From positions 20,274,001 to 20,338,000 of the forward strand of contig OZ059898.1 of assembly GCA_964057225.1 (NCBI GenBank): a stretch of 64,000 nt of DNA, read 5' to 3'. Both the position numbers and the translations under genes were made by a program. The notes beneath the pieces are model-generated. The model did not search any database, was not told where the DNA came from, and saw only the letters and a list, made by a program, of their open reading frames with translations. The stretch is from Auanema rhodensis (lineage: Eukaryota; Animalia; Nematoda). Positions 1 through 24,800 of the stretch are shown piece after piece (the first letter of the stretch is position 1; each line of letters begins with the position of its first letter).

Positions 1-3000
1 AACCATGACTTTAAAGTTTACGTGTACTTTAATTTATGCTAATTAAGTGTACACATGATGTGCACTTGGTATGTAACTCGCTTCACGTCAAAGATAAAGA
101 GATGCGGTTTTCAAAATTAGATTCCCCATGTCCATATTAGTCTAAAAACAAATTTTTATTGATATTGGTGCATGGTAACTATGACTTTGAAATTTACGTG
201 AACTTTAATTTATGCTAATTAAGTGTACACATGATGTGCACTTGGTATGTAACTCGCTTCACGTCAAAGATAAAGAGATGCGGTTTTCAAAATTAGATTC
301 CTCATGTCCATATTAGTCTAAAAACAAATTTTTATTAATATTGGTGCATGGTAACCATGACTTTGAAATTTATGTGAACTTTAATTTATGCTAATTAAGT
401 GTACACATGATGTGCACTTGGTATGTAACTCGCTTCACGTGAAAGATAAAGAGATGCGGTTTTCAAAATTAGATTCCTCATGTCCATATTAGTCTAAAAA
501 CGAATTTTTATTGATATTGATGCATGGTAATCATGACTTTGAAATTTTCGTGAACTTTAATTTATGCTTATTAAGTGTACACGTGATGTGCACTTGGTAT
601 GTAACTCGCTTCACGTGAAAGATAAAGGGATGCGGTTTTCAAAATTAGATTCCCCATGTCCATATTAGTCTAAAAACAAATTTTTGTTGATATTGGTGGA
701 TGGTAACCATGACTTTGAAATTTACGTGAACTTTAATTTATGCTAATTAAGTGTACACGTGATGTGCACTTGGTATGTAACTCGCTTCACGTGAAAGATA
801 AAGAGATGCGATTTTCAAAATTAGATTTCGCATGTCCATATTAGTCTAAAAACGAATTTTTATTGATATTGGTGCATGGTAACCATGACTTTGAAATTTA
901 CGTGAACTTTAATTTATGCTAATTAAGTGTACACGTGATGTGCACTTGGTATGTAACTCGCTTCACGTGAAAGATAAAGAGATGCGGTTTTCAAAATTAG
1001 ATTCCCCATGTCCATATTAGTCTAAAAACAAATTTTTATTGATATTGGTGCATGGTAACCATGACTTTGAAATTTACGTGAACTTTAATTTATGCTAATT
1101 AAGTGTACACGTGATGTGCACTCGGTATGTAACTCGCTTCACGTGAAAGATAAAGAGATGCGGTTTTCAAAATTAGATTCCGCATGTCCATATTAGTCTA
1201 AAAACAAATTTTTATTGATATTGGTGCATGGTAACCATGACTTTGAAATTTACGTGAACTTTAATTTATGCTAATTAAGTGTACACGTGATGTGCACTTG
1301 GTATGTAACTCGCTTCACGTGAAAGATAAAGAGATGCGGTTTCCAAAATTAGATTTCGCATGTCCATATTAGTCTAAAAACAAATTTTTGTTGATATTTG
1401 TGGATGGTAACCATGACTTTGAAATTTACGTGAACTTTAATTTATGCTAATTAAGTGTACACATGATGTGCACTTGGTATGTAACTCGCTTCACGTCAAA
1501 GATAAAGAGATGCGGTTTTCAAAATTAGATTCCCCATGTCCATATTAGTCTAAAAACAAATTTTTATTGATATTGGTGCATGGTAACCATGACTTTGAAA
1601 TTTACGTGAACTTTAATTTATGCTAATTAAGTGTACACGTGATGTGCACTTGGTATGTAACTCGCTTCACGTGAAAGATAAAGAGATGCGGTTTTCAAAA
1701 TTAGATTCCCCATGTCCATATTAGTCTAAAAACAAATTTTTATTGATATTGGTGCATGGCAACCATGACTTTAAAGTTTACGTGTACTTTAATTTATGCT
1801 AATTAAGTGTACACATGATGTGCACTTGGTATGTAACTCGCTTCACGTCAAAGATAAAGAGATGCGGTTTTCAAAATTAGATTCCCCATGTCCATATTAG
1901 TCTAAAAACAAATTTTTATTGATATTGGTGCATGGTAACTATGACTTTGAAATTTACGTGAACTTTAATTTATGCTAATTAAGTGTACACATGATGTGCA
2001 CTTGGTATGTAACTCGCTTCACGTCAAAGATAAAGAGATGCGGTTTTCAAAATTAGATTCCTCATGTCCATATTAGTCTAAAAACAAATTTTTATTAATA
2101 TTGGTGCATGGTAACCATGACTTTGAAATTTATGTGAACTTTAATTTATGCTAATTAAGTGTACACATGATGTGCACTTGGTATGTAACTCGCTTCACGT
2201 GAAAGATAAAGAGATGCGGTTTTCAAAATTAGATTCCTCATGTCCATATTAGTCTAAAAACGAATTTTTATTGATATTGATGCATGGTAATCATGACTTT
2301 GAAATTTTCGTGAACTTTAATTTATGCTTATTAAGTGTACACGTGATGTGCACTTGGTATGTAACTCGCTTCACGTGAAAGATAAAGGGATGCGGTTTTC
2401 AAAATTAGATTCCCCATGTCCATATTAGTCTAAAAACAAATTTTTGTTGATATTGGTGGATGGTAACCATGACTTTGAAATTTACGTGAACTTTAATTTA
2501 TGCTAATTAAGTGTACACGTGATGTGCACTTGGTATGTAACTCGCTTCACGTGAAAGATAAAGAGATGCGATTTTCAAAATTAGATTTCGCATGTCCATA
2601 TTAGTCTAAAAACGAATTTTTATTGATATTGGTGCATGGTAACCATGACTTTGAAATTTACGTGAACTTTAATTTATGCTAATTAAGTGTACACGTGATG
2701 TGCACTTGGTATGTAACTCGCTTCACGTGAAAGATAAAGAGATGCGGTTTTCAAAATTAGATTCCCCATGTCCATATTAGTCTAAAAACAAATTTTTATT
2801 GATATTGGTGCATGGTAACCATGACTTTGAAATTTACGTGAACTTTAATTTATGCTAATTAAGTGTACACGTGATGTGCACTCGGTATGTAACTCGCTTC
2901 ACGTGAAAGATAAAGAGATGCGGTTTTCAAAATTAGATTCCGCATGTCCATATTAGTCTAAAAACAAATTTTTATTGATATTGGTGCATGGTAACCATGA

Positions 3001-3222
3001 CTTTGAAATTTACGTGAACTTTAATTTATGCTAATTAAGTGTACACGTGATGTGCACTTGGTATGTAACTCGCTTCACGTGAAAGATAAAGAGATGCGGT
3101 TTCCAAAATTAGATTTCGCATGTCCATATTAGTCTAAAAACAAATTTTTGTTGATATTTGTGGATGGTAACCATGACTTTGAAATTTACGTGAACTTTAA
3201 TTTATGCTAATTAAGTGTACAC
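1..3222 (+). repeat. 10-monomer (1760-bp) higher-order duplication
   Basis: 1-1462 matches 1761-3222, including rare variants TTAAAGTTTACGTGTAC (11/1771), GAAATTTTCG (541/2301) and CTCGGT (1121/2881). First difference seen at 1463/3223. Confidence 0.92.
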
Positions 3223-5669
3223 GTGATGTGCACTTGGTATGTAACTCGCTTCACGTGAAAGATGAAGAGATACGGTTTTCAAAATTAGGTTCCCCATGTC
3301 CATATTAGTCTAAAAACAAATTTTTATTAATTTTGGTGCATGGTAACCATGACTTTGAAATTTACGTGAACTTTAATTTATGCTAATTAAGTGTACACGT
3401 GAAGTGCACTTGGTATGTAACTCGCTTCACGTGAAAGATAAAGAGATGCGGTTTTCAAAATTAGATTCCCCATGACCATATTAGTCTAAAAACAAATTTT
3501 TATTGATATTGGTGCATGGTAACCATGACTTTGAAATTTACGTGAACTTTAATTTATGCTAATTAAGTGTACACGTGATGTGCACTTGGTATGTAACTCG
3601 CTTCACGTGAAAGATAAAGAGATGCGGTTTCCAAAATTAGATTTCGCATGTCCATATTAGTCTAAAAACAAATTTTTATTGATATTGGTGCATGGTAACC
3701 ATGACTTTGAAATTTACGTGAACTTCAATTTATGCTAATTAAGTGTACACGTGATGTGCACTTGGTATGTAACTCGCTTCACGTGAAAGATAAAGAGATG
3801 CGGTTTTCAAAATTAGATTCCCCATGTTTATATTAGTCTAAAAACAAATTTTTATTGATATTGGTGCATGGCAACCATGACTTTAAAATCTACGAGTACT
3901 TTAATTTATGCTAATTAAGTGTACACATGATGTGCACTTGGTATGTAACTCGCTTCACGTGAAAGATAAAGAGATGCGGTTTTCAAAATTAGATTCCTCA
4001 TGTCTATATTAGTCTAAAAACGAATTTTTATTGATATTGATGCATGGTAACCATGACTTTGAAATTTACGTGAACTTTAATTTATGCTTATTAAGTGTAC
4101 ACGTGATGTGCACTTGGTATGTAACTCGCTTCACGTCAAAGATAAAGCGATGCGGTTTTCAAAATTAGATTTCGCATGTCCATATTAGTCTAAAAACAAA
4201 TTTTTATTGATATTGGTGCATGGTAACCATGACTTTGAAATTTACGTGAACTTTAATTTATGCTAATTAAGTGTACACGTGATGTGCACTTGGTATGTAA
4301 CTCGCTTCACGTGAAAGATGAAGAGATGCGGTTTTCAAAATTAGGTTCCCCATGTCCATATTAGTCTAAAAACAAATTTTTGTTGATATTGGTGGATGGT
4401 AACCATGACTTTCAAATTTACGTGAACTTTAATTTATGCTAATTAAGTGTACACATGATGTGCACTTGGTATGTAACTCGCTTCACGTGAAAGATAAAGA
4501 GATGCGGTTTTCAAAATTAGATTTCGCATGTCCATATTAGTCTAAAAACAAATTTTTATTGATATTGGTGCATGGTAACCATGACTTTGAAATTTACGTG
4601 AACTTTAATTTATGCTAATTAAGTGTACACGTGATGTGCACTTGGTATGTAACTCGCTTCACGTGAAAGATAAAGAGATGCGGTTTTCAAAATTAGATTC
4701 CCCATGTCCATATTAGTCTAAAAACAAATTTTTATTGATATTGGTGCATGGTAACCATGACTTTGAAATTTACGTGAACTTTAATTTATGCTAATTAAGT
4801 GTACACGTGAAGTGCACTTGGTATGTAACTCGCTTCACGTGAAAGACAAAGAGATGCGGTTTTCAAAATTAGATTCCCCATGTCCATATTAGTCTAAAAA
4901 CAAATTTTTATTGATATTGGTGCATGGTAACCATGACTTTGAAATTTACGTGAACTTTAATTTATGCTAATTAAGTGTACACATGATGTGCACTTGGTAT
5001 GTAACTCGCTTCACGTGAAAGATAAAGAGATGCGGTTTTTAAAATTAGATTCCGCATGTCCATATTAGTCTAAAAACAAATTTTTATTGATATTGGTGCA
5101 TGGTAACCATGACTTTGAAATTTACGTGAACTTTAATTTATGCTAATTAAGTGTACACGTGATGTGCACTTGGTATGTAACTCGCTTCACGTGAAAGATA
5201 AAGAGATGCGGTTTCCAAAATTAGATTTCGCATGTCCATATTAGTCTAAAAACAAATTTTTGTTGATATTTGTGGATGGTAACCATGACTTTGAAATTTA
5301 CGTGAACTTTAATTTATGCTAATTAAGTGTACACGTGATGTGCACTTGGTATGTAACTCGCTTCACGTGAAAGATGAAGAGATGCGGTTTTCAAAATTAG
5401 GTTCCCCATGTCCATATTAGTCTAAAAACAAATTTTTATTGATATTGGTGCATGGTAACCATGACTTTGAAATTTACGTGAACTTTAATTTATGCTAATT
5501 AAGTGTACACGTGAAGTGCACTTGGTATGTAACTCGCTTCACGTGAAAGATAAAGAGATGCGGTTTTCAAAATTAAATTCCCCATGACCATATTAGTCTA
5601 AAAACAAATTTTTATTGATATTGGTGCATGGTAACCATGACTTTGAAATTTACGTGAACTTTAATTTAT

Positions 5670-7080
5670 GCTAATTAAGTGTACACATGATGTGCACTCG
5701 GTATGTAACTCGCTTCACGTGAAAGATAAAGAGATGCGGTTTTCAAAATTAGATTCCTCATGTCCATATTAGTCTAAAAACGAATTTTTATTGATATTGA
5801 TGCATGGTAACCATGACTTTGAAATTTACGTGAACTTTAATTTATGCTTATTAAGTGTACACGTGATGTGCACTTGGTATGTAACTCGCTTCACGTGAAA
5901 GATAAAGGGATGCGGTTTTCAAAATTAGATTCCCCATGTCCATATTAGTCTAAAAACAAATTTTTGTTGATATTGGTGGATGGTAACCATGACTTTGAAA
6001 TTTACGTGAACTTTAATTTATGCTAATTAAGTGTACACGTGATGTGCACTTGGTATGTAACTCGCTTCACGTGAAAGATGAAGAGATGCGGTTTTCAAAA
6101 TTAGGTTCCCCATGTCCATATTAGTCTAAAAACAAATTTTTGTTGATATTGGTGGATGGTAACCATGACTTTCAAATTTACGTGAACTTTAATTTATGCT
6201 AATTAAGTGTACACATGATGTGCACTTGGTATGTAACTCGCTTCACGTGAAAGATGAAGAGATGCGGTTTTCAAAATTAGATTTCGCATGTCCATATTAG
6301 TCTAAAAACAAATTTTTATTGATATTGGTGCATGGTAACCATGACTTTGAAATTTACGTGAACTTTAATTTATGCTAATTAAGTGTACACATGATGTGCA
6401 CTCGGTATGTAACTCGCTTCACGTGAAAGATAAAGAGATGCGGTTTTCAAAATTAGATTCCTCATGTCCATATTAGTCTAAAAACGAATTTTTATTGATA
6501 TTGATGCATGGTAACCATGACTTTGAAATTTACGTGAACTTTAATTTATGCTTATTAAGTGTACACGTGATGTGCACTTGGTATGTAACTCGCTTCACGT
6601 GAAAGATAAAGGGATGCGGTTTTCAAAATTAGATTCCCCATGTCCATATTAGTCTAAAAACAAATTTTTGTTGATATTGGTGGATGGTAACCATGACTTT
6701 GAAATTTACGTGAACTTTAATTTATGCTAATTAAGTGTACACGTGATGTGCACTTGGTATGTAACTCGCTTCACGTGAAAGATGAAGAGATGCGGTTTTC
6801 AAAATTAGGTTCCCCATGTCCATATTAGTCTAAAAACAAATTTTTGTTGATATTGGTGGATGGTAACCATGACTTTCAAATTTACGTGAACTTTAATTTA
6901 TGCTAATTAAGTGTACACATGATGTGCACTTGGTATGTAACTCGCTTTACGTGAAAGATGAAGAGATGCGGTTTTCAAAATTAGATTTCGCATGTCCATA
7001 TTAGTCTAAAAACAAATTTTTATTGATATTGGTGCATGGTAACCATGACTTTGAAATTTACGTGAACTTTAATTTATGCT
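5670..7080 (+). repeat. 4-monomer (704-bp) tandem duplication
   Basis: CACTCGG variant at 5699 and 6403, each followed by the same series (CCTCA/CGAA/TTGATG, AAGGGA, GATGAA/GGTTCC, TTTCAAA). Confidence 0.85.
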
Positions 7081-9848
7081 AATTAAGTGTACACATGATG
7101 TGCACTTGGTATGTAACTCGCTTCACGTCAAAGATAAAGAGATGCGGTTTTCAAAATTAGATTTGGCATGTCCATATTAGTCTAAAAACAAATTTTTATT
7201 GATATTGGTGCATGGTAACCATGACTTTGAAATTTACGTGAACTTTAATTTATGCTAATTAAGTGTACACATGATGTGCACTTGGTATGTAACTCGCTTC
7301 ACGTCAAAGATAAAGAGATGCGGTTTTCAAAATTAGATTTGGCATGTCCATATTAGTCTAAAAACAAATTTTTATTGATATTGGTGGATGGTAACCATGA
7401 CTTTCAAATTTACGTGAACTTCAATTTATGCTAATTAAGTGTACACGTGATGTGCACTTAGTATGACTCTCGCTTCGCGTCAACGATAAAGAGATGCGGT
7501 TTCCAAAATTAGATTCCCCATGTCCATATTAGTCTAAAAACAAATTTTTATTAATATTGGTGCATGGTAACCATGACTTTGAAATTTACGTGAACTTTAT
7601 TTATGCTAATTGAGTGTACACATGATGTGCACTTGGTATGTAACTCGCTTCACGTGAAAGATGAAGAGATGCGGTTTTCAAAATTAGATTTCGCATGTCC
7701 ATATTAGTCTAAAAACAAATTTTTATTGATATTGGTGCATGGTAACCATGACTTTGAAATTTACGTGAACTTTAATTTATGCTTATTAAGTGTACACGTG
7801 ATGTGCACTTGGTATGTAACTCGCTTCACGTCAAAGATAAAGCGATGCGGTTTTCAAAATTAGATTTCGCATGTCCATATTAGTCTAAAAACAAATTTTT
7901 ATTGATATTGGTGCATGGTAACCATGACTTTGAAATTTACGTGAACTTTAATTTATGCTAATTAAGTGTACACATGATGTGCACTTGGTATGTAACTCGC
8001 TTCACGTCAAAGATAAAGAGATGCGGTTTTCAAAATTAGATTTGGCATGTCCATATTAGTCTAAAAACAAATTTTTATTGATATTGGTGCATGGTAACCA
8101 TGACTTTGAAATTTACGTGAACTTTAATTTATGCTAATTAAGTGTACACATGATGTGCACTTGGTATGTAACTCGCTTCACGTCAAAGATAAAGAGATGC
8201 GGTTTTCAAAATTAGATTTGGCATGTCCATATTAGTCTAAAAACAAATTTTTATTGATATTGGTGGATGGTAACCATGACTTTCAAATTTACGTGAACTT
8301 CAATTTATGCTAATTAAGTGTACACGTGATGTGCACTTAGTATGTAACTCGCTTCGCGTCAACGATAAAGAGATGCGGTTTCCAAAATTAGATTTGGCAT
8401 GTCCATATTAGTCTAAAAACAAATTTTTATTGATATTGGTGCATGGTAACCATGACTTTGAAATTTACGTGAACTTTAATTTATGCTAATTAAGTGTACA
8501 CATGATGTGCACTTGGTATGTAACTCGCTTCACGTCAAAGATAAAGAGATGCGGTTTTCAAAATTAGATTTGGCATGTCCATATTAGTCTAAAAACAAAT
8601 TTTTATTGATATTGGTGGATGGTAACCATGACTTTCAAATTTACGTGAACTTCAATTTATGCTAATTAAGTGTACACGTGATGTGCACTTAGTATGTAAC
8701 TCGCTTCGCGTCAACGATAAAGAGATGCGGTTTCCAAAATTAGATTCCCCATGTCCATATTAGTCTAAAAACAAATTTTTATTAATATTGGTGCATGGTA
8801 ACCATGACTTTGAAATTTACGTGAACTTTATTTATGCTAATTGAGTGTACACATGATGTGCACTTGGTATGTAACTCGCTTCACGTGAAAGATAAAGAGG
8901 TGCGGTTTTCAAAATTAGATTCCGCATGTCCATATTAGTCTAAAAACAAATTTTTATTGATATTGGTGCATGGTAACCATGACTTTGAAATTTACGTGAA
9001 CTTTAATTTATGCTAATTAAGTGTACACGTGATGTGCACTTGGTATGTAACTCGCTTCACGTGAAAGATAAAGAGATGCGGTTTTCAAAATTAGATTCCC
9101 CATGTCCATATTAGTCTAAAAACAAATTTTTATTGATATTGGTGCATGGTAACCATGACTTTGAAATTTACGTGAACTTTAATTTATGCTAATTAAGTGT
9201 ACACGTGATGTGCACTTGGTATGTAACTCGCTTCACGAGAAAGATAAAAAGATGCGGTTTTCAAATTTAGATTTCGCGTGTCCATAATAGTCTAAAAACA
9301 AATTTTTATTGATATTGGTGCATGGTAACCATGACTTTGAAGTTTACGTGAACTTTAATTTATGCTAATTAAGTGTACACGTGAAGTGCACTTGGTATGT
9401 AACTCGCTTCACGTGAAAGATAAAGAGATGCGGTTTTCAAAATTAGATTCCCCATGTCCATATTAGTCTAAAAACAAATTTTTATTGATATTGGTGCATG
9501 GCAACCATGACTTTAAAATTTACGTGTACTTTAATTTGTGCTAATTAAGTGTACACATGATGTGCACTCGGTATGTAACTCGCTTCACGTGAAAGATAAA
9601 GAGATGCGGTTTTCAAAATTAGATTCCGCATGTCCATATTAGTCTAAAAACAAATTTTTATTGATATTGGTGCATGGTAACCATGACTTTGAAATTTACG
9701 TGAACTTTAATTTATGCTAATTAAGTGTACACGTGATGTGCACTTGGTGTGTAACTCGCTTCACGTGAAAGATAAAGAGATGCGGTTTTCAAAATTAGAT
9801 TTCCCATGTTTATATTAGTCTAAAAACAAATTTTTATTGATATTGGTG

Positions 9849-9870
9849 CATGGCAACCATGGTCATGCGG
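9849..9870. other. Strand-switch (inversion) junction inside the satellite array
   Basis: ...GCATGGCAACCATG|GTCATGCGGAATC...: the forward monomer ends at 9861 and the reverse monomer can be read from 9859 (shared ATG). The junction forms the palindrome ACCATGGT (9856-9863). Confidence 0.97.
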
Positions 9871-12800
9871 AATCTAATTTTGAAAACCGCACCTCTTTAT
9901 CTTTCACGTGAAGCGAGTTACATACCAAGTGCACATCATGTGTACACTCAATTAGCATAAATTAAAGTTCACGTAAATTTCAAAGTCATGGTTACCATGC
10001 ACCAATATCAATAAAAATTTGTTTTTAGACTAATATGGACATGGGGAATCTAATTTTGAAAACCGCATCTCTTTATCTTTCACGTGAAGCGAGTTACATA
10101 CCAAGTGCACTTCACGTGTACACTTAATTAGCATAAATTAAAGTTCACGTAAATTTCAAAGTCATGGTTACCATGCACCAATATCAATAAAAATTTGTTT
10201 TTAGACTAATATGGACATGGGGAATCTAATTTTGAAAACCGCATCTCTTTATCTTTCACGTGAAGCGAGTTACATACCAAGTGCACATCACGTGTACACT
10301 TAATTAGCATAAATTAAAGTTCACGTAAATTTCAAAGTCATGGTTACCATGCACCAATATCAATAAAAATTTGTTTTTAGACTAATATGGACATGCGAAA
10401 TCTAATTTTGAAAACCGCATCTCTTTATCTTTCACGTGAAGCGAGTTACATACCAAGTGCACATCATGTGTACACTTAATTAGCATAAATTAAAGTTCAC
10501 GTAAATTTGAAAGTCATGGTTACCATCCACCAATATCAACAAAAATTTGTTTTTAGACTAATATGGACATGGGGAACCTAATTTTGAAAACCGCATCTCT
10601 TCATCTTTCACGTGAAGCGAGTTACATACCAAGTGCACATCACGTGTACACTTAATTAGCATAAATTAAAGTTCACGTAAATTTCAAAGTCATGGTTACC
10701 ATGCACCAATATCAATAAAAATTTGTTTTTAGACTAATATGGACATGCGAAATCTAATTTTGAAAACCGCATCGCTTTATCTTTGACGTGAAGCGAGTTA
10801 CATACCAAGTGCACATCACGTGTACACTTAATAAGCATAAATTAAAGTTCACGTAAATTTCAAAGTCATGGTTACCATGCATCAATATCAATAAAAATTC
10901 GTTTTTAGACTAATATAGACATGAGGAATCTAATTTTGAAAACCGCATCTCTTTATCTTTCACGTGAAGCGAGTTACATACCAAGTGCACATCATGTGTA
11001 CACTTAATTAGCATAAATTAAAGTACTCGTAGATTTTAAAGTCATGGTTGCCATGCACCAATATCAATACAAATTTGTTTTTAGACTAATATAAACATGG
11101 GGAATCTAATTTTGAAAACCGCATCTCTTTATCTTTCACGTGAAGCGAGTTACATACAAAGTGCACATCACGTGTACACTTAATTAGCATAAATTGAAGT
11201 TCACGTAAATTTCAAAGTCATGGTTACCATGCACCAATATCAATAAAAATTTGTTTTTAGACTAATATGGACATGCGAAATCTAATTTTGGAAACCGCAT
11301 CTCTTTATCTTTCACGTGAAGCGAGTTACATACCAAGTGCACATCACGTGTACACTTAATTAGCATAAATTAAAGTTCACGTAAATTTCAAAGTCATGGT
11401 TACCATGCACCAATATCAATAAAAATTTGTTTTTAGACTAATATGGACATGCGAAATCTAATTTTGAAAACCGCATCTCTTTATCTTTCACGTGAAGCGA
11501 GTTACATACCAAGTGCACATCATGTGTACACTTAATTAGCATAAATTAAAGTTCACGTAAATTTGAAAGTCATGGTTACCATCCACCAATATCAACAAAA
11601 ATTTGTTTTTAGACTAATATGGACATGGGGAACCTAATTTTGAAAACCGCATCTCTTTATCTTTCACGTGAAGCGAGTTACATACCAAGTGCACATCATG
11701 TGTACACTTAATTAGCATAAATTAAAGTTCACGTAAATTTGAAAGTCATGGTTACCATCCACCAATATCAACAAAAATTTGTTTTTAGACTAATATGGAC
11801 ATGCGAAATCTAATTTTGAAAACCGCATCTCTTTATCTTTCACGTGAAGCGAGTTACATACCAAGTGCACATCATGTGTACACTTAATTAGCATAAATTA
11901 AAGTTCACGTAAATTTGAAAGTCATGGTTACCATCCACCAATATCAACAAAAATTTGTTTTTAGACTAATATGGACATGGGGAACCTAATTTTGAAAACC
12001 GCATCTCTTCATCTTTCACGTGAAGCGAGTTACATACCAAGTGCACATCACGTGTACACTTAATTAGCATAAATTAAAGTTCACGTAAATTTCAAAGTCA
12101 TGGTTACCATGCACCAATATCAATAAAAATTTGTTTTTAGACTAATATGGACATGCGAAATCTAATTTTGAAAACCGCATCGCTTTATCTTTGACGTGAA
12201 GCGAGTTACATACCAAGTGCACATCACGTGTACACTTAATAAGCATAAATTAAAGTTCACGTAAATTTGAAAGTCATGGTTACCATCCACCAATATCAAC
12301 AAAAATTTGTTTTTAGACTAATATGGACATGGGGAACCTAATTTTGAAAACCGCATCTCTTTATCTTTCACGTGAAGCGAGTTACATACCAAGTGCACAT
12401 CACGTGTACACTTAATTAGCATAAATTAAAGTTCACGTAAATTTCAAAGTCATGGTTACCATGCACCAATATCAATAAAAATTTGTTTTTAGACTAATAT
12501 GGACATGCGAAATCTAATTTTGAAAACCGCATCGCTTTATCTTTGACGTGAAGCGAGTTACATACCAAGTGCACATCACGTGTACACTTAATAAGCATAA
12601 ATTAAAGTTCACGTAAATTTCAAAGTCATGGTTACCATGCACCAATATCAATAAAAATTTGTTTTTAGACTAATATGGACATGCGAAATCTAATTTTGAA
12701 AACCGCATCTCTTTATCTTTCACGTGAAGCGAGTTACATACCAAGTGCACATCACGTGTACACTTAATTAGCATAAATTAAAGTTCACGTAAATTTCAAA

Positions 12801-15800
12801 GTCATGGTTACCATGCACCAATATCAATAAAAATTTGTTTTTAGACTAATATGGACATGGGGAACCTAATTTTGAAAACCGCATCTCTTCATCTTTCACG
12901 TGAAGCGAGTTACATACCAAGTGCACATCACGTGTACACTTAATTAGCATAAATTAAAGTTCACGTAAATTTCAAAGTCATGGTTACCATCCACAAATAT
13001 CAACAAAAATTTGTTTTTAGACTAATATGGACATGCGAAATCTAATTTTGGAAACCGCATCTCTTTATCTTTCACGTGAAGCGAGTTACATACCAAGTGC
13101 ACATCACGTGTACACTTAATTAGCATAAATTAAAGTTCACGTAAATTTCAAAGTCATGGTTACCATGCACCAATATCAATAAAAATTTGTTTTTAGACTA
13201 ATATGGACATGCGGAATCTAATTTTAAAAACCGCATCTCTTTATCTTTCACGTGAAGCGAGTTACATACCGAGTGCACATCATGTGTACACTTAATTAGC
13301 ATAAATTAAAGTTCACGTAAATTTCAAAGTCATGGTTACCATGCACCAATATCAATAAAAATTTGTTTTTAGACTAATATGGACATGGGGAATCTAATTT
13401 TGAAAACCGCATCTCTTTATCTTTCACGTGAAGCGAGTTACATACCAAGTGCACTTCACGTGTACACTTAATTAGCATAAATTAAAGTTCACGTAAATTT
13501 CAAAGTCATGGTTACCATGCACCAATATCAATAAAAATTTGTTTTTAGACTAATATGGACATGGGGAATCTAATTTTGAAAACCGCATCTCTTTATCTTT
13601 CACGTGAAGCGAGTTACATACCAAGTGCACATCACGTGTACACTTAATTAGCATAAATTAAAGTTCACGTAAATTTCAAAGTCATGGTTACCATGCACCA
13701 ATATCAATAAAAATTTGTTTTTAGACTAATATGGACATGCGAAATCTAATTTTGAAAACCGCATCTCTTTATCTTTCACGTGAAGCGAGTTACATACCAA
13801 GTGCACATCATGTGTACACTTAATTAGCATAAATTAAAGTTCACGTAAATTTGAAAGTCATGGTTACCATCCACCAATATCAACAAAAATTTGTTTTTAG
13901 ACTAATATGGACATGGGGAACCTAATTTTGAAAACCGCATCTCTTCATCTTTCACGTGAAGCGAGTTACATACCAAGTGCACATCACGTGTACACTTAAT
14001 TAGCATAAATTAAAGTTCACGTAAATTTCAAAGTCATGGTTACCATGCACCAATATCAATAAAAATTTGTTTTTAGACTAATATGGACATGCGAAATCTA
14101 ATTTTGAAAACCGCATCGCTTTATCTTTGACGTGAAGCGAGTTACATACCAAGTGCACATCACGTGTACACTTAATAAGCATAAATTAAAGTTCACGTAA
14201 ATTTCAAAGTCATGGTTACCATGCATCAATATCAATAAAAATTCGTTTTTAGACTAATATAGACATGAGGAATCTAATTTTGAAAACCGCATCTCTTTAT
14301 CTTTCACGTGAAGCGAGTTACATACCAAGTGCACATCATGTGTACACTTAATTAGCATAAATTAAAGTACTCGTAGATTTTAAAGTCATGGTTGCCATGC
14401 ACCAATATCAATACAAATTTGTTTTTAGACTAATATAAACATGGGGAATCTAATTTTGAAAACCGCATCTCTTTATCTTTCACGTGAAGCGAGTTACATA
14501 CAAAGTGCACATCACGTGTACACTTAATTAGCATAAATTGAAGTTCACGTAAATTTCAAAGTCATGGTTACCATGCACCAATATCAATAAAAATTTGTTT
14601 TTAGACTAATATGGACATGCGAAATCTAATTTTGGAAACCGCATCTCTTTATCTTTCACGTGAAGCGAGTTACATACCAAGTGCACATCACGTGTACACT
14701 TAATTAGCATAAATTAAAGTTCACGTAAATTTCAAAGTCATGGTTACCATGCACCAATATCAATAAAAATTTGTTTTTAGACTAATATGGACATGCGAAA
14801 TCTAATTTTGAAAACCGCATCTCTTTATCTTTCACGTGAAGCGAGTTACATACCAAGTGCACATCATGTGTACACTTAATTAGCATAAATTAAAGTTCAC
14901 GTAAATTTGAAAGTCATGGTTACCATCCACCAATATCAACAAAAATTTGTTTTTAGACTAATATGGACATGGGGAACCTAATTTTGAAAACCGCATCTCT
15001 TCATCTTTCACGTGAAGCGAGTTACATACCAAGTGCACATCACGTGTACACTTAATTAGCATAAATTAAAGTTCACGTAAATTTCAAAGTCATGGTTACC
15101 ATGCACCAATATCAATAAAAATTTGTTTTTAGACTAATATGGACATGCGAAATCTAATTTTGAAAACCGCATCGCTTTATCTTTGACGTGAAGCGAGTTA
15201 CATACCAAGTGCACATCACGTGTACACTTAATAAGCATAAATTAAAGTTCACGTAAATTTCAAAGTCATGGTTACCATGCATCAATATCAATAAAAATTC
15301 GTTTTTAGACTAATATAGACATGAGGAATCTAATTTTGAAAACCGCATCTCTTTATCTTTCACGTGAAGCGAGTTACATACCAAGTGCACATCATGTGTA
15401 CACTTAATTAGCATAAATTAAAGTACTCGTAGATTTTAAAGTCATGGTTGCCATGCACCAATATCAATAAAAATTTGTTTTTAGACTAATATAAACATGG
15501 GGAATCTAATTTTGGAAACCGCATCTCTTTATCTTTCACGTGAAGCGAGTTACATACCAAGTGCACATCACGTGTACACTTAATTAGCATAAATTAAAGT
15601 TCACGTAAATTTCAAAGTCATGGTTACCATGCACCAATATCAATAAAAATTTGTTTTTAGACTAATATGGACATGCGAAATCTAATTTTGAAAACCGCAT
15701 CTCTTTATCTTTCACGTGAAGCGAGTTACATACCAAGTGCACATCATGTGTACACTTAATTAGCATAAATTAAAGTTCACGTAAATTTGAAAGTCATGGT

Positions 15801-18800
15801 TACCATCCACCAATATCAACAAAAATTTGTTTTTAGACTAATATGGACATGCGAAATCTAATTTTGAAAACCGCATCTCTTTATCTTTCACGTGAAGCGA
15901 GTTACATACCAAGTGCACATCATGTGTACACTTAATTAGCATAAATTAAAGTTCACGTAAATTTGAAAGTCATGGTTACCATCCACCAATATCAACAAAA
16001 ATTTGTTTTTAGACTAATATGGACATGGGGAACCTAATTTTGAAAACCGCATCTCTTCATCTTTCACGTGAAGCGAGTTACATACCAAGTGCACATCACG
16101 TGTACACTTAATTAGCATAAATTAAAGTTCACGTAAATTTCAAAGTCATGGTTACCATGCACCAATATCAATAAAAATTTGTTTTTAGACTAATATGGAC
16201 ATGCGAAATCTAATTTTGAAAACCGCATCGCTTTATCTTTGACGTGAAGCGAGTTACATACCAAGTGCACATCACGTGTACACTTAATAAGCATAAATTA
16301 AAGTTCACGTAAATTTCAAAGTCATGGTTACCATGCACCAATATCAATAAAAATTTGTTTTTAGACTAATATGGACATGCGAAATCTAATTTTGAAAACC
16401 GCATCTCTTTATCTTTCACGTGAAGCGAGTTACATACCAAGTGCACATCATGTGTACACTTAATTAGCATAAATTAAAGTTCACGTAAATTTGAAAGTCA
16501 TGGTTACCATCAACCAATATCAACAAAAATTTGTTTTTAGACTAATATGGACATGCGAAATCTAATTTTGAAAACCGCATCTCTTTATCTTTCACGTGAA
16601 GCGAGTTACATACCAAGTGCACATCATGTGTACACTTAATTAGCATAAATTAAAGTTCACGTAAATTTGAAAGTCATGGTTACCATCCACCAATATCAAC
16701 AAAAATTTGTTTTTAGACTAATATGGACATGGGGAACCTAATTTTGAAAACCGCATCTCTTCATCTTTCACGTGAAGCGAGTTACATACCAAGTGCACAT
16801 CACGTGTACACTTAATTAGCATAAATTAAAGTTCACGTAAATTTCAAAGTCATGGTTACCATGCACCAATATCAATAAAAATTTGTTTTTAGACTAATAT
16901 GGACATGCGAAATCTAATTTTGAAAACCGCATCGCTTTATCTTTGACGTGAAGCGAGTTACATACCAAGTGCACATCACGTGTACACTTAATAAGCATAA
17001 ATTAAAGTTCACGTAAATTTCAAAGTCATGGTTACCATGCATCAATATCAATAAAAATTCGTTTTTAGACTAATATAGACATGAGGAATCTAATTTTGAA
17101 AACCGCATCTCTTTATCTTTCACGTGAAGCGAGTTACATACCAAGTGCACATCATGTGTACACTTAATTAGCATAAATTAAAGTACTCGTAGATTTTAAA
17201 GTCATGGTTGCCATGCACCAATATCAATAAAAATTTGTTTTTAGACTAATATAAACATGGGGAATCTAATTTTGAAAACCGCATCTCTTTATCTTTCACG
17301 TGAAGCGAGTTACATACCAAGTGCACATCATGTGTACACTTAATTAGCATAAATTAAAGTTCACGTAAATTTCAAAGTCATGGTTACCATGCACCAATAT
17401 CAATAAAAATTTGTTTTTAGACTAATATGGACATGCGAAATCTAATTTTGGAAACCGCATCTCTTTATCTTTCACGTGAAGCGAGTTACATACCAAGTGC
17501 ACATCACGTGTACACTTAATTAGCATAAATTAAAGTTCACGTAAATTTCAAAGTCATGGTTACCATGCACCAATATCAATAAAAATTTGTTTTTAGACTA
17601 ATATGGTCATGGGGAATCTAATTTTGAAAACCGCATCTCTTTATCTTTCACGTGAAGCGAGTTACATACCAAGTGCACTTCACGTGTACACTTAATTAGC
17701 ATAAATTAAAGTTCACGTAAATTTCAAAGTCATGGTTACCATGCACCAAAATTAATAAAAATTTGTTTTTAGACTAATATGGACATGGGGAACCTAATTT
17801 TGAAAACCGTATCTCTTCATCTTTCACGTGAAGCGAGTTACATACCAAGTGCACATCACGTGTACACTTAATTAGCATAAATTAAAGTTCACGTAAATTT
17901 CAAAGTCATGGTTACCATTCACAAATATCAACAAAAATTTGTTTTTAGACTAATATGGACATGCGAAATCTAATTTTGGAAACCGCATCTCTTTATCTTT
18001 CACGTGAAGCGAGTTACATACCAAGTGCACATCACGTGTACACTTAATTAGCATAAATTAAAGTTCACGTAAATTTCAAAGTCATGGTTACCATGCACTA
18101 ATATCAATAAAAATTTGTTTTTAGACTAATATGGACATGCGGAATCTAATTTTGAAAACCGCATCTCTTTATCTTTCACGTGAAGCGAGTTACATACCGA
18201 GTGCACATCACGTGTACACTTAATTAGCATAAATTAAAGTTCACGTAAATTTCAAAGTCATGGTTACCATGCACCAATATCAATAAAAATTTGTTTTTAG
18301 ACTAATATGGACATGGGGAATCTAAATTTGAAAACCGCATCTCTTTATCTTTCACGTGAAGCGAGTTACATACCAAGTGCACATCACGTGTACACTTAAT
18401 TAGCATAAATTAAAGTTCACGTAAATTTCAAAGTCATGGTTACCATGCACCAATATCAATAAAAATTCGTTTTTAGACTAATATGGACATGCGAAATCTA
18501 ATTTTGAAAATCGCATCTCTTTATCTTTCACGTGAAGCGAGTTACATACCAAGTGCACATCACGTGTACACTTAATTAGCATAAATTAAAGTTCACGTAA
18601 ATTTCAAAGTCATGGTTACCATCCACCAATATCAACAAAAATTTGTTTTTAGACTAATATGGACATGGGGAATCTAATTTTGAAAACCGCATCCCTTTAT
18701 CTTTCACGTGAAGCGAGTTACATACCAAGTGCACATCACGTGTACACTTAATAAGCATAAATTAAAGTTCACGAAAATTTCAAAGTCATGATTACCATGC

Positions 18801-21800
18801 ATCAATATCAATAAAAATTCGTTTTTAGACTAATATGGACATGAGGAATCTAATTTTGAAAACCGCATCTCTTTATCTTTCACGTGAAGCGAGTTACATA
18901 CCAAGTGCACATCATGTGTACACTTAATTAGCATAAATTAAAGTTCACATAAATTTCAAAGTCATGGTTACCATGCACCAATATTAATAAAAATTTGTTT
19001 TTAGACTAATATGGACATGAGGAATCTAATTTTGAAAACCGCATCTCTTTATCTTTGAAGTGAAGCGAGTTACATACCAAGTGCACATCATGTGTACACT
19101 TAATTAGCATAAATTAAAGTTCACGTAAATTTCAAAGTCATAGTTACCATGCACCAATATCAATAAAAATTTGTTTTTAGACTAATATGGACATGGGGAA
19201 TCTAATTTTGAAAACCGCATCTCTTTATCTTTGACGTGAAGCGAGTTACATACCAAGTGCACATCATGTGTACACTTAATTAGCATAAATTAAAGTACAC
19301 GTAAACTTTAAAGTCATGGTTGCCATGCACCAATATCAATAAAAATTTGTTTTTAGACTAATATGGACATGGGGAATCTAATTTTGAAAACCGCATCTCT
19401 TTATCTTTCACGTGAAGCGAGTTACATACCAAGTGCACATCACGTGTACACTTAATTAGCATAAATTAAAGTTCACGTAAATTTCAAAGTCATGGTTACC
19501 ATGCACCAATATCAATAAAAATTTGTTTTTAGACTAATATGGACATGGGGAATCTAATGTTAAAAACCGCATCTCTTTATCTTTCACGTGAAGCGAGTTA
19601 CATACCAAGTGCACATCACGTGTACACTTAATTAGCATAAATTAAAGTACTCGTAGATTTTAAAGTCATGGTTGCCATGCACCAATATCAATAAAAATTT
19701 GTTTTTAGACTAATATAAACATGGGAAATCTAATTTTGAAAACCGCATCTCTTTATCTTTCACGTGAAGCGAGTTACATACCAAGTGCACTTCACGTGTA
19801 CACTTAATTAGCATAAATTAAAGTTCACGTAAATTTCAAAGTCATGGTTACCATGCACCAAAATTAATAAAAATTTGTTTTTAGACTAATATGGACATGC
19901 GAAATCTAATTTTGAAAACCGCATCTCTTTATCTTTGACGTGAAGCGAGTTACATACCAAGTGCACATCATGTGTACACTTAATTAGCATAAATTAAAGT
20001 TCACGTAAATTTGAAAGTCATGGTTACCATCCACCAATATCAACAAAAATTTGTTTTTAGACTAATATGGACATGGGGAACCTAATTTTGAAAACCGCAT
20101 CTCTTCATCTTTCACGTGAAGCGAGTTACATACCGAGTGCACATCACGTGTACACTTAATTAGCATAAATTAAAGTTCACGTAAATTTCAAAGTCATGGT
20201 TACCATGCACCAATATCAATAAAAATTTGTTTTTAGACTAATATGGACATGGGGAATCTAATTTTGAAAACCGCATCTCTTTATCTTTCACGTGAAGCGA
20301 GTTACATACCAAGTGCACTTCACGTGTACACTTAATTAGCATAAATTAAAGTTCACGTAAATTTCAAAGTCATGGTTACCATGCACCAATATTAATAAAA
20401 ATTTGTTTTTAGACTAATATGGACATGAGGAATCTAATTTTGAAAACCGCATCTCTTTATCTTTGACGTGAAGCGAGTTACATACCAAGTGCACATCATG
20501 TGTACACTTAATTAGCATAAATTAAAGTTCACGTAAATTTGAAAGTCATGGTTACCATCCACCAATATCAACAAAAATTTGTTTTTAGACTAATATGGAC
20601 ATGGGGAACCTAATTTTGAAAACCGCATCTCTTCATCTTTCACGTGAAGCGAGTTACATACCAAGTGCACATCACGTGTACACTTAATTAGCATAAATTA
20701 AAGTTCACGTAAATTTCAAAGTCATGGTTACCATGCACCAATATCAATAAAAATTTGTTTTTAGACTAATATGGACATGCGAAATCTAATTTTGAAAACC
20801 GCATCGCTTTATCTTTGACGTGAAGCGAGTTACATACCAAGTGCACATCACGTGTACACTTAATAAGCATAAATTAAAGTTCACGTAAATTTCAAAGTCA
20901 TGGTTACCATGCATCAATATCAATAAAAATTCGTTTTTAGACTAATATAGACATGAGGAATCTAATTTTGAAAACCGCATCTCTTTATCTTTCACGTGAA
21001 GCGAGTTACATACCAAGTGCACATCATGTGTACACTTAATTAGCATAAATTAAAGTACTCGTAGATTTTAAAGTCATGGTTGCCATGCACCAATATCAAT
21101 AAAAATTTGTTTTTAGACTAATATAAACATGGGGAATCTAATTTTGAAAACCGCATCTCTTTATCTTTCACGTGAAGCGAGTTACATACCAAGTGCACAT
21201 CACGTGTACACTTAATTAGCATAAATTGAAGTTCACGTAAATTTCAAAGTCATGGTTACCATGCACCAATATCAATAAAAATTTGTTTTTAGACTAATAT
21301 GGACATGCGAAATCTAATTTTGGAAACCGCATCTCTTTATCTTTCACGTGAAGCGAGTTACATACCAAGTGCACATCACGTGTACACTTAATTAGCATAA
21401 ATTAAAGTTCACGTAAATTTCAAAGTCATGGTTACCATGCACCAATATCAATAAAAATTTGTTTTTAGACTAATATGGTCATGGGGAATCTAATTTTGAA
21501 AACCGCATCTCTTTATCTTTCACGTGAAGCGAGTTACATACCAAGTGCACTTCACGTGTACACTTAATTAGCATAAATTAAAGTTCACGTAAATTTCAAA
21601 GTCATGGTTACCATGCACCAAAATTAATAAAAATTTGTTTTTAGACTAATATGGACATGGGGAACCTAATTTTGAAAACCGTATCTCTTTATCTTTCACG
21701 TGAAGCGAGTTACATACCAAGTGCACATCACGTGTACACTTAATTAGCATAAATTAAAGTTCACGTAAATTTCAAAGTCATGGTTACCATCCACAAATAT

Positions 21801-24800
21801 CAACAAAAATTTGTTTTTAGACTAATATGGACATGCGAAATCTAATTTTGGAAACCGCATCTCTTTATCTTTCACGTGAAGCGAGTTACATACCAAGTGC
21901 ACATCACGTGTACACTTAATTAGCATAAATTGAAGTTCACGTAAATTTCAAAGTCATGGTTACCATGCACTAATATCAATAAAAATTTGTTTTTAGACTA
22001 ATATGGACATGCGGAATCTAATTTTGAAAACCGCATCTCTTTATCTTTCACGTGAAGCGAGTTACATACCGAGTGCACATCACGTGTACACTTAATTAGC
22101 ATAAATTAAAGTTCACGTAAATTTCAAAGTCATGGTTACCATGCACCAATATCAATAAAAATTTGTTTTTAGACTAATATGGACATGGGGAATCTAATTT
22201 TGAAAACCGCATCTCTTTATCTTTCACGTGAAGCGAGTTACATACCAAGTGCACATCACGTGTACACTTAATTAGCATAAATTAAAGTTCACGTAAATTT
22301 CAAAGTCATGGTTACCATGCACCAATATCAATAAAAATTCGTTTTTAGACTAATATGGACATGCGAAATCTAATTTTGAAAATCGCATCTCTTTATCTTT
22401 CACGTGAAGCGAGTTACATACCAAGTGCACATCACGTGTACACTTAATTAGCATAAATTAAAGTTCACGTAAATTTCAAAGTCATGGTTACCATCCACCA
22501 ATATCAACAAAAATTTGTTTTTAGACTAATATGGACATGGGGAATCTAATTTTGAAAACCGCATCCCTTTATCTTTCACGTGAAGCGAGTTACATACCAA
22601 GTGCACATCACGTGTACACTTAATAAGCATAAATTAAAGTTCACGAAAATTTCAAAGTCATGATTACCATGCATCAATATCAATAAAAATTCGTTTTTAG
22701 ACTAATATGGACATGAGGAATCTAATTTTGAAAACCGCATCTCTTTATCTTTGACGTGAAGCGAGTTACATACCAAGTGCACATCATGTGTACACTTAAT
22801 TAGCATAAATTAAAGTTCACGTAAATTTCAAAGTCATAGTTACCATGCACCAATATCAATAAAAATTTGTTTTTAGACTAATATGGACATGGGCAATCTA
22901 ATTTTGAAAACCGCATCTCTTTATCTTTGACGTGAAGCGAGTTACATACCAAGTGCACATCATGTGTACACTTAATTAGCATAAATTAAAGTACACGTAA
23001 ACTTTAAAGTCATGGTTGCCATGCACCAATATCAATAAAAATTTGTTTTTAGACTAATATGGACATGGGGAATCTAATTTTGAAAACCGCATCTCTTTAT
23101 CTTTCACGTGAAGCGAGTTACATACCAAGTGCACATCACGTGTACACTTAATTAGCATAAATTAAAGTTCACGTAAATTTCAAAGTCATGGTTACCATGC
23201 ACCAATATCAATAAAAATTTGTTTTTAGACTAATATGGACATGCGAAATCTAATTTTGAAAACCGCATCTCTTTATCTTTCACGTGAAGCGAGTTACATA
23301 CCAAGTGCACATCACGTGTACACTTAATTAGCATAAATTAAAGTACACGTAAATTTTAAAGTCATGGATGCCATGCACCAATATCAATAAAAAATTGTTT
23401 TTAGACTAATATGGACATGCGAAATCTAATTTTGAAAACCGCATCTCTTTATCTTTCACGTGAAGCGAGTTACATACCAAGTGCACATCACGTGTACACT
23501 TAATTAGCATAAATTAAAGTTCACGTAAATTTCAAAGTCATGGTTACCATGCATCAATATCAATAAAAATTTGTTTTTAGACTAATATGGACATGCGAAA
23601 TCTAATTTTGGAAACCGCATCTCTTTATCTTTCACGTGAAGCGAGTTACATACCAAGTGCACATCACGTGTACATTTAATTAGCATAAATTAAAGTTCAC
23701 GTAAATTTCAAACTCATGGTTACCATGAACCAATATCAATAAAAATTTGTTTTTAGACTAATATGGACATGGAGAATCTAATTATGAAAACCGCATCTCT
23801 TTATCTTTCACGTGAAGCGAGTTACATACCAAGTGCACATCACGTGTACATTTAATTAGCATAAATTAAAGTTCACGTAAATTTCAAAGTCATGGTTACC
23901 ATGCACCAATATCAATAAAATTTTGTTTTTAGACTAATATGGATATGGGGAATCTAATTTTGAAAACCGCATCTCTTTATTTTTCACGTGAAGCGAGTTA
24001 CATACCAAGTGCACATCACGTGTACATTTAATTAGCATAAATTAAAGTTCACGTAAATTTCAAAGTCATGGTTACCATGCACCAATATCAATAAAATTTT
24101 GTTTTTAGACTAATATGGACATGGGGAATCTAATTTTGAAAACCGCATCTCTTTATCTTTCACGTGAAGCGAGTTACATACCAAGTGCACATCACGTGTA
24201 CATTTAATTAGCATAAATTAAAGTTCACGTAAATTTCAAACTCATGGTTACCATGCACCAATATCAATAAAAATTTGTTTTTAGACTAATATGGACATGG
24301 AGAATCTAATTTTGAAAACCGCATCTCTTTATCTTTCACGTGAAGCGAGTTACATACCAAGTGCACATCACGTGTACATTTAATTAGCATAAATTAAAGT
24401 TCACGTAAATTTCAAACTCATGGTTACCATGCACCAATATCAATAAAAATTTGTTTTTAGACTAATATGGACATGAGGAATCTAATTTTGAAAACCGCAT
24501 CTATTTATCTTTCACGCGAAGCGAGTTACATACCAAGTGCACATCACGTGTACATTTAATTAGCATAAAGTAAAGTTCACGTAAATTTCAAAGTCATGGT
24601 TACCATGAACCAATATCAATAAAAATTTGTTTTTAGACTCATATGGACATGGGGAATCTAATTTTGAAAACCGCATCTCTTTATCTTTCACGTGAGGCGA
24701 GTTACATACCAAGTGCACATCACGTGTACATTTAATTAGCATAAGTTAAAGTTCACGTAAATTTCAAAGTCATGGTTACCATGCACCAATATCAATAAAA

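Follow-up and report, generated by a model that had tools for sequence, protein, structure and literature searches.

A 176-bp satellite of the nematode Auanema rhodense, assigned below to AT-1, changes strand once in the 64-kb window analysed here (the window being the whole stretch of DNA presented above), at positions 9859-9862. This is probably a genuine inversion breakpoint, that is, a head-to-head strand switch within AT-1 whose arms were joined via 3 bp of inverted microhomology without filler, the palindromic dyad located at this point not having broken as a hairpin or cruciform.

Organization of the array

The window consists throughout of one AT-rich satellite with a 176-bp monomer and 32-33% G+C. 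Tandem Repeats Finder divides it into two adjoining 176-bp arrays, located at 1-9861 (56 copies) and at 9859-64000 (307.7 copies); the consensus unit of one array is the reverse complement of that of the other. In the 8-10 kb bin, GC skew turns from about +0.12 to about -0.12, and from there to the window end it remains negative. A monomer consensus was built from 285 right-arm monomers, and each arm was aligned to it cyclically. Identity to the consensus up to the junction amounts to 96.9% for the left arm and 97.8% for the right arm. The left arm (1-9861) comprises 56 copies on the minus strand relative to the right arm and runs off the window start; its cyclic alignment contains two 1-nt deletions and no insertions.

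Judging from its match to a published probe, the satellite is AT-1 of A. rhodense. The 28-mer AT-1 FISH probe, whose sequence was taken from the Methods of a preprint (10.64898/2026.08.27.747507), is a part of our consensus and has 295 matches with at most one mismatch in the window, compared with 0 expected by chance. In the left arm these matches lie on the minus strand. The match is exact from 23648 onward, while before this point there is one mismatch, corresponding to monomer position 89. AT-1 is an autosomal terminal repeat; all autosomes carry it, and somatic cells lose it from the 12-cell stage onward (10.64898/2026.08.27.747507). Every monomer also contains two CACGTG boxes, one of them within the 10-bp palindrome TTCACGTGAA, as well as CACGTA (consensus positions 45-54, 78-86 and 109-115); no LINE insertion interrupts the array within the window.

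Anatomy of the junction

Cyclic alignment reaches the junction from both sides and leaves no foreign bases between the arms. The first monomer position is 129 for the left arm, read on the minus strand (CATGGTTGCC...), and 1 for the right arm (ATGGTCATGCGG...). The last 13 bases of the left arm (9849-9861) form the dyad CATGGCAACCATG, which differs from the consensus CATGGTTACCATG (monomer positions 129-141) by 136A>G; this variant occurs 12 times in the window. The trinucleotide ATG at 9859-9861 is common to both arms, constituting 3 bp of inverted microhomology across which the breakpoint is ambiguous. At the junction there is a new palindrome, ACCATGGT (9856-9863), which includes CCATGG, an NcoI site found nowhere else in the window. 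ACCATGGT, CCATGG and the junction 23-mer GGCAACCATGGTCATGCGGAATC occur once each in 64 kb.

These results agree in most points with the sequence-only reading of this DNA. It had described an inversion without foreign DNA, and this is borne out by the adjoining arrays, the flip in GC skew and the alignments without inserted bases. Its further statements, namely that the left arm ends on the last base of the dyad, that the right arm begins at another monomer position with a 3-bp ATG overlap and that a new palindrome arises at the junction, all hold, and both this palindrome and the junction k-mer that it singled out are present only once in the window. It had also called the switch the main structural landmark of the window. 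This is fair. The switch is the only one in 64 kb: a k-mer strand test detected neither a second strand switch nor a concealed inverted patch in this stretch. Neither a reciprocal breakpoint of a two-break inversion nor the mirror arms of a fold-back are visible in the window.

The same reading drew attention to a T in the right-arm start (ATGG-T-CATG). The usual allele is indeed ATGGACATG, with A at position 5 in 354 of the 365 monomers, but the T is not special to the junction, as 10 of the 365 monomers, from both arms, carry it. T at 9863 was also considered as a templated snap-back base and this was discarded, the base being indistinguishable from the existing 2.7% allele. Likewise discarded was a model of 4-nt CATG cohesive ends: the right-arm consensus reads TATGG, not CATGG, before position 4, and only 3 bp are common to the arms. 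The junction is crossed by an ORF of 36 amino acids, for which look-up gave no recorded gene product. Inspection of the sequence revealed no telomere repeat at the junction.

Relationship between the two arms

Two monomer positions divide the window into subfamilies. All 133 full monomers of 1-23586, which belong to both arms, have C at position 89, and all 229 monomers of 23587-64000 have T there. At position 127, G is present in 133/133 monomers left of the subfamily boundary and C in 144/229 right of it. The boundary itself is sharp (23411-23763) and the orientation of monomers is unchanged there. The right arm accordingly has a proximal part (9862-23586, plus strand), representing the left-arm subfamily (C89, G127) with the same higher-order monomer types, and a distal part (23587-64000, plus strand), representing the second subfamily (T89) in the same orientation and holding the exact AT-1 probe sequence. 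Since C89 is present in all 133 monomers of both arms, the switch is located within one subfamily domain of at least 23.5 kb.

Monomer types follow each other in matching order on both arms. Right-arm monomers R_17-R_27 (12851-14786) correspond variant for variant to left-arm monomers L_25-L_35 (5415-3480). Extension of exact k-mers revealed exact inverted stretches between the arms of up to 1224 bp (3265-4488 versus 20466-21689). As both arms represent one subfamily, with the same ordered monomer types and long exact inverted stretches, the flip occurred within one array.

Several further patterns were observed in the array. Higher-order periods in 1-23586 amount to 19 monomers at R_1-R_27, approximately 22 at R_43-R_75 and 10 at L_39-L_54, and a 4-monomer unit is repeated at L_16-L_23. 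In the distal subfamily, another higher-order pattern is marked by monomers of 175 bp that lack 1 nt at position 38; there are 14 of them in 42945-64000, spaced 3-21 monomers apart. Beside the junction, monomer types private to the left arm have been amplified; for example, the type 10C 11C 12A 47G 81T is present in six copies at 7175-8582. Such local amplifications are carried by the ten to twenty-eight left monomers nearest to the junction and are absent from the right arm. Monomer L_1 (9462-9637), located two monomers away from the junction, looks like a product of conversion or crossover: its 5' variants (10C, 69G, 81T) are those of the "x" type and its 3' variants (111A, 123T, 136G) those of the "p" type.

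Microhomology and position of the breakpoint

As a null for what chance would give, we enumerated every distinct inverted join that two consensus monomers can form (22,296 in total). Microhomology is absent from 72% of them and reaches 3 bp or more in only 2.2%, which favours microhomology-mediated joining. The 3-bp overlap is mildly informative as to mechanism. Classical end joining, too, could make use of 3 bp of microhomology. A replication template switch using ATG/CATG microhomology, as suggested from the sequence alone, is compatible with the junction and draws mild support from the same 2.2%; only ATG is common to the arms, and the pathway itself is something that we infer.

Position of the break is a different matter. 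The left break falls in or at the dyad in 8% of possible joins (6.8% among joins with at least 3 bp of microhomology), and either break does so in 13-16%. As a single event, coincidence of the switch with the dyad is no more than chance gives and is not informative.

Alternative explanations

The junction could have arisen by fold-back on one specific partner. In such a scenario, the 3' end at 9861 would have folded back over 928 nt, primed at the start of monomer L_5 and copied about 100-176 nt, yielding the first right-arm monomer, R_0, after which another in-phase switch or subsequent turnover would have followed. R_0 (9859-10034, plus strand) carries the variants 5T, 10C, 34C, 81T, 89C and 91C; it occupies the higher-order "x" position and is followed by the regular pattern. 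Its closest relative in the window is L_5 (8758-8933, minus strand), which differs from it at 3 positions and starts 928 nt left of the junction. 34C is found in these two monomers only (2/365), and 91C only in these two and in L_12 (7527-7702; 3/365). Given these private variants, R_0 and L_5 are identical by descent over roughly positions 6-103. A loop of 928 nt would moreover fall within the range of spacers of human fold-backs, 766-70,466 bp (PMC3907307).

Against this, the mirror register breaks immediately after R_0, with 9 differences between R_1 and L_6 and 5 between R_2 and L_7, and L_5 has a deletion at position 104 and 151T, both missing from R_0. The arms as a whole do not display mirror symmetry in the window: ungapped identity is at most 57% and there is no unique axis. 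The best monomer-level mirror offsets (-27, +8, -2, +30, -8 and -17) recur with the higher-order period of approximately 10 monomers, and monomers paired in mirror register differ by 4-11. Constant mirror register around a single-copy spacer, by which a fold-back is recognized, was not found, private variants being common to R_0 and L_5 only. The same pattern would also result if, once the inversion had occurred, inverted repeats close to each other had undergone gene conversion. We therefore regard fold-back on L_5 as a possible but rather unlikely origin of the junction.

Still less probable is an artefact of assembly or library preparation, in which a chimeric long read or a wrong path in the assembly graph would have joined AT-1 pieces of opposite orientation. 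Multi-megabase satellites are the hardest regions to assemble. Fifteen sequencing runs from six studies contain at most 0.47 of 19 sampled words; four runs were mapped as short Logan contigs (31-100 nt) of the satellite, and among the pieces listed none bridges 9861. Loose ends of Logan contigs in runs X1 and X7 read CTGTCTCTTATACAC and GATCGGAAGAGC, which we take to be remnants of library adapters. Structure of the arms speaks against such an origin. The arms share a higher-order pattern yet are not mirror images of each other, and a missed-adapter fold-back read, which would give an exact palindrome, is thereby excluded. The join has microhomology and lacks adapter or filler, one subfamily and one higher-order pattern extend over both sides, and R_0 is related by descent to a nearby left-arm monomer. 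Taken together, this internal evidence favours a genuine junction.

The last alternative was proposed by the sequence-only reading, according to which the switch could result from hairpin or cruciform breakage: the 13-bp dyad would have been extruded and cut, or would have stalled a fork, so that its structure set the position of the switch. The dyad with whose last base the left arm terminates is indeed the strongest in the monomer, CATGGTTACCATG having arms of 6 and a loop of 1 in the consensus. As single-stranded DNA, however, this dyad folds with only -3.0 to -3.1 kcal/mol (z -1.5 to -1.6), and 15-20 of 200 shuffled sequences fold equally well; for the junction context, z is -0.3. The copy at the junction is moreover degraded, as 136A>G removes the sixth pair of its arms. 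A hairpin-capped or cruciform-resolved end should give symmetry about the dyad centre, which lies at 9855. Symmetry at the junction spans 8 bp only, with its centre at 9859/9860. The start of the right arm does not correspond to the complement of position 129 and is out of register by 48 or 128 nt. Longer inverted homologies offered by the monomer, namely the 10-bp TTCACGTGAA and the 6-bp arms of the dyad itself, were left unused. Palindromes known to be prone to breakage are usually much longer than 13 bp. With a weak fold, no symmetry about 9855 and a single break whose position has an 8-16% chance expectation, breakage of the dyad as a hairpin or cruciform is not supported, and we consider it very unlikely.

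Proposed mechanism and implications

We return to joining via inverted microhomology as the preferred explanation of the switch. AT-1 is a germline-restricted 176-bp repeat arranged in multi-megabase blocks at autosome ends. Within one such block, a DNA end or stalled nascent strand probably terminated in ...AACCATG, at monomer position 129 of the complementary strand. This end would then have been linked to position 1-4 (ATGG...) of another monomer on the opposite strand, or have primed synthesis there, using the 3 bp of inverted microhomology (ATG), with no filler added. Fold-back priming, replicative template switching and microhomology-mediated (alternative) end joining would all yield such a junction. 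From its anatomy we infer the repair pathway; the event may have been a duplication by fold-back or one of the two breakpoints of an inversion. A reciprocal junction, if any, would lie beyond the window start.

The dyad with its CATG would matter at most as a palindromic tetranucleotide supplying inverted microhomology. CATG is its own reverse complement and provides inverted microhomology at every copy, so in our opinion the presence of CATG at switches can be explained without a hairpin. A broader proposal may be derived from this: the germline-only satellites of A. rhodense might switch strand preferentially at short palindromic motifs such as CATG, whose inverted microhomology would feed a fold-back or polymerase-theta-type pathway. 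We put this forward as a tentative and, at present, improbable generalization. If it is true, megabase arrays free of somatic selection would represent a base-resolved archive of break repair in the nematode germline, in which the AT-1 junction, with its possible partner at 928 nt (R_0/L_5), would be one entry.

Taken alone, the AT-1 switch is one further base-resolved inversion junction in a satellite and is of little consequence. On the practical side, the unique CCATGG and the junction 23-mer can anchor read mapping, PCR or assembly validation in a very uniform multi-megabase array. The junction would also be one data point for a genome-wide catalogue, and junctions of this type, taken together, could serve to address the question of which repair pathway shapes DNA that is kept only in the worm germline.

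Comparison with known systems

Several known types of rearrangement resemble the AT-1 junction. Like rearrangements centred on palindromes (hairpin-capped ends, cruciform resolution), the AT-1 junction has a short dyad where the break occurred and a newly formed palindrome of 8 bp. It differs from them in being located off the dyad centre and in that the dyad is only 13 bp long and forms a weak hairpin.

In the same species, a palindromic motif is already linked to DNA breakage. SFE, a 29-nt palindromic motif of break and telomere addition in A. rhodense and O. tipulae, has only 15 high-scoring matches in all eliminated DNA (10.64898/2026.08.27.747507). We considered the AT-1 dyad as a candidate SFE and rejected it, because the dyad is present in every monomer. 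The two are alike as palindromic motifs associated with breakage, but no telomere repeat accompanies the AT-1 junction.

A closer parallel is offered by fold-back inverted duplications. In human, their junctions have 2-8 bp of inverted microhomology and the long spacers given above (Hermetz et al. 2014, PMC3907307), and in yeast, fold-back priming proceeds from inverted repeats of 5-11 bp (Al-Zain et al. 2023, PMC10622511). The AT-1 junction shares with them short inverted microhomology, absence of filler and a possible 928-nt loop of published size. Their extended arms in mirror register are not seen here beyond one monomer; turnover may have erased them.

The AT-1 switch is a feature of a known kind, strand switches being established in complete assemblies. 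Strand switches within satellite arrays are reported in recent work on complete human centromeres (10.64898/2026.07.22.740206, PMC13684623). The sequence-only reading had stressed that satellite arrays are normally head-to-tail; in this light, it overstated the rarity of switches. Switches of human alpha-satellite are like the present one in that a single repeat family is found in both orientations, with an abrupt junction in an otherwise head-to-tail array. The setting is different: AT-1 belongs to a holocentric nematode, and it is a non-centromeric, germline-restricted repeat that is eliminated from the soma (10.64898/2026.08.27.747507).
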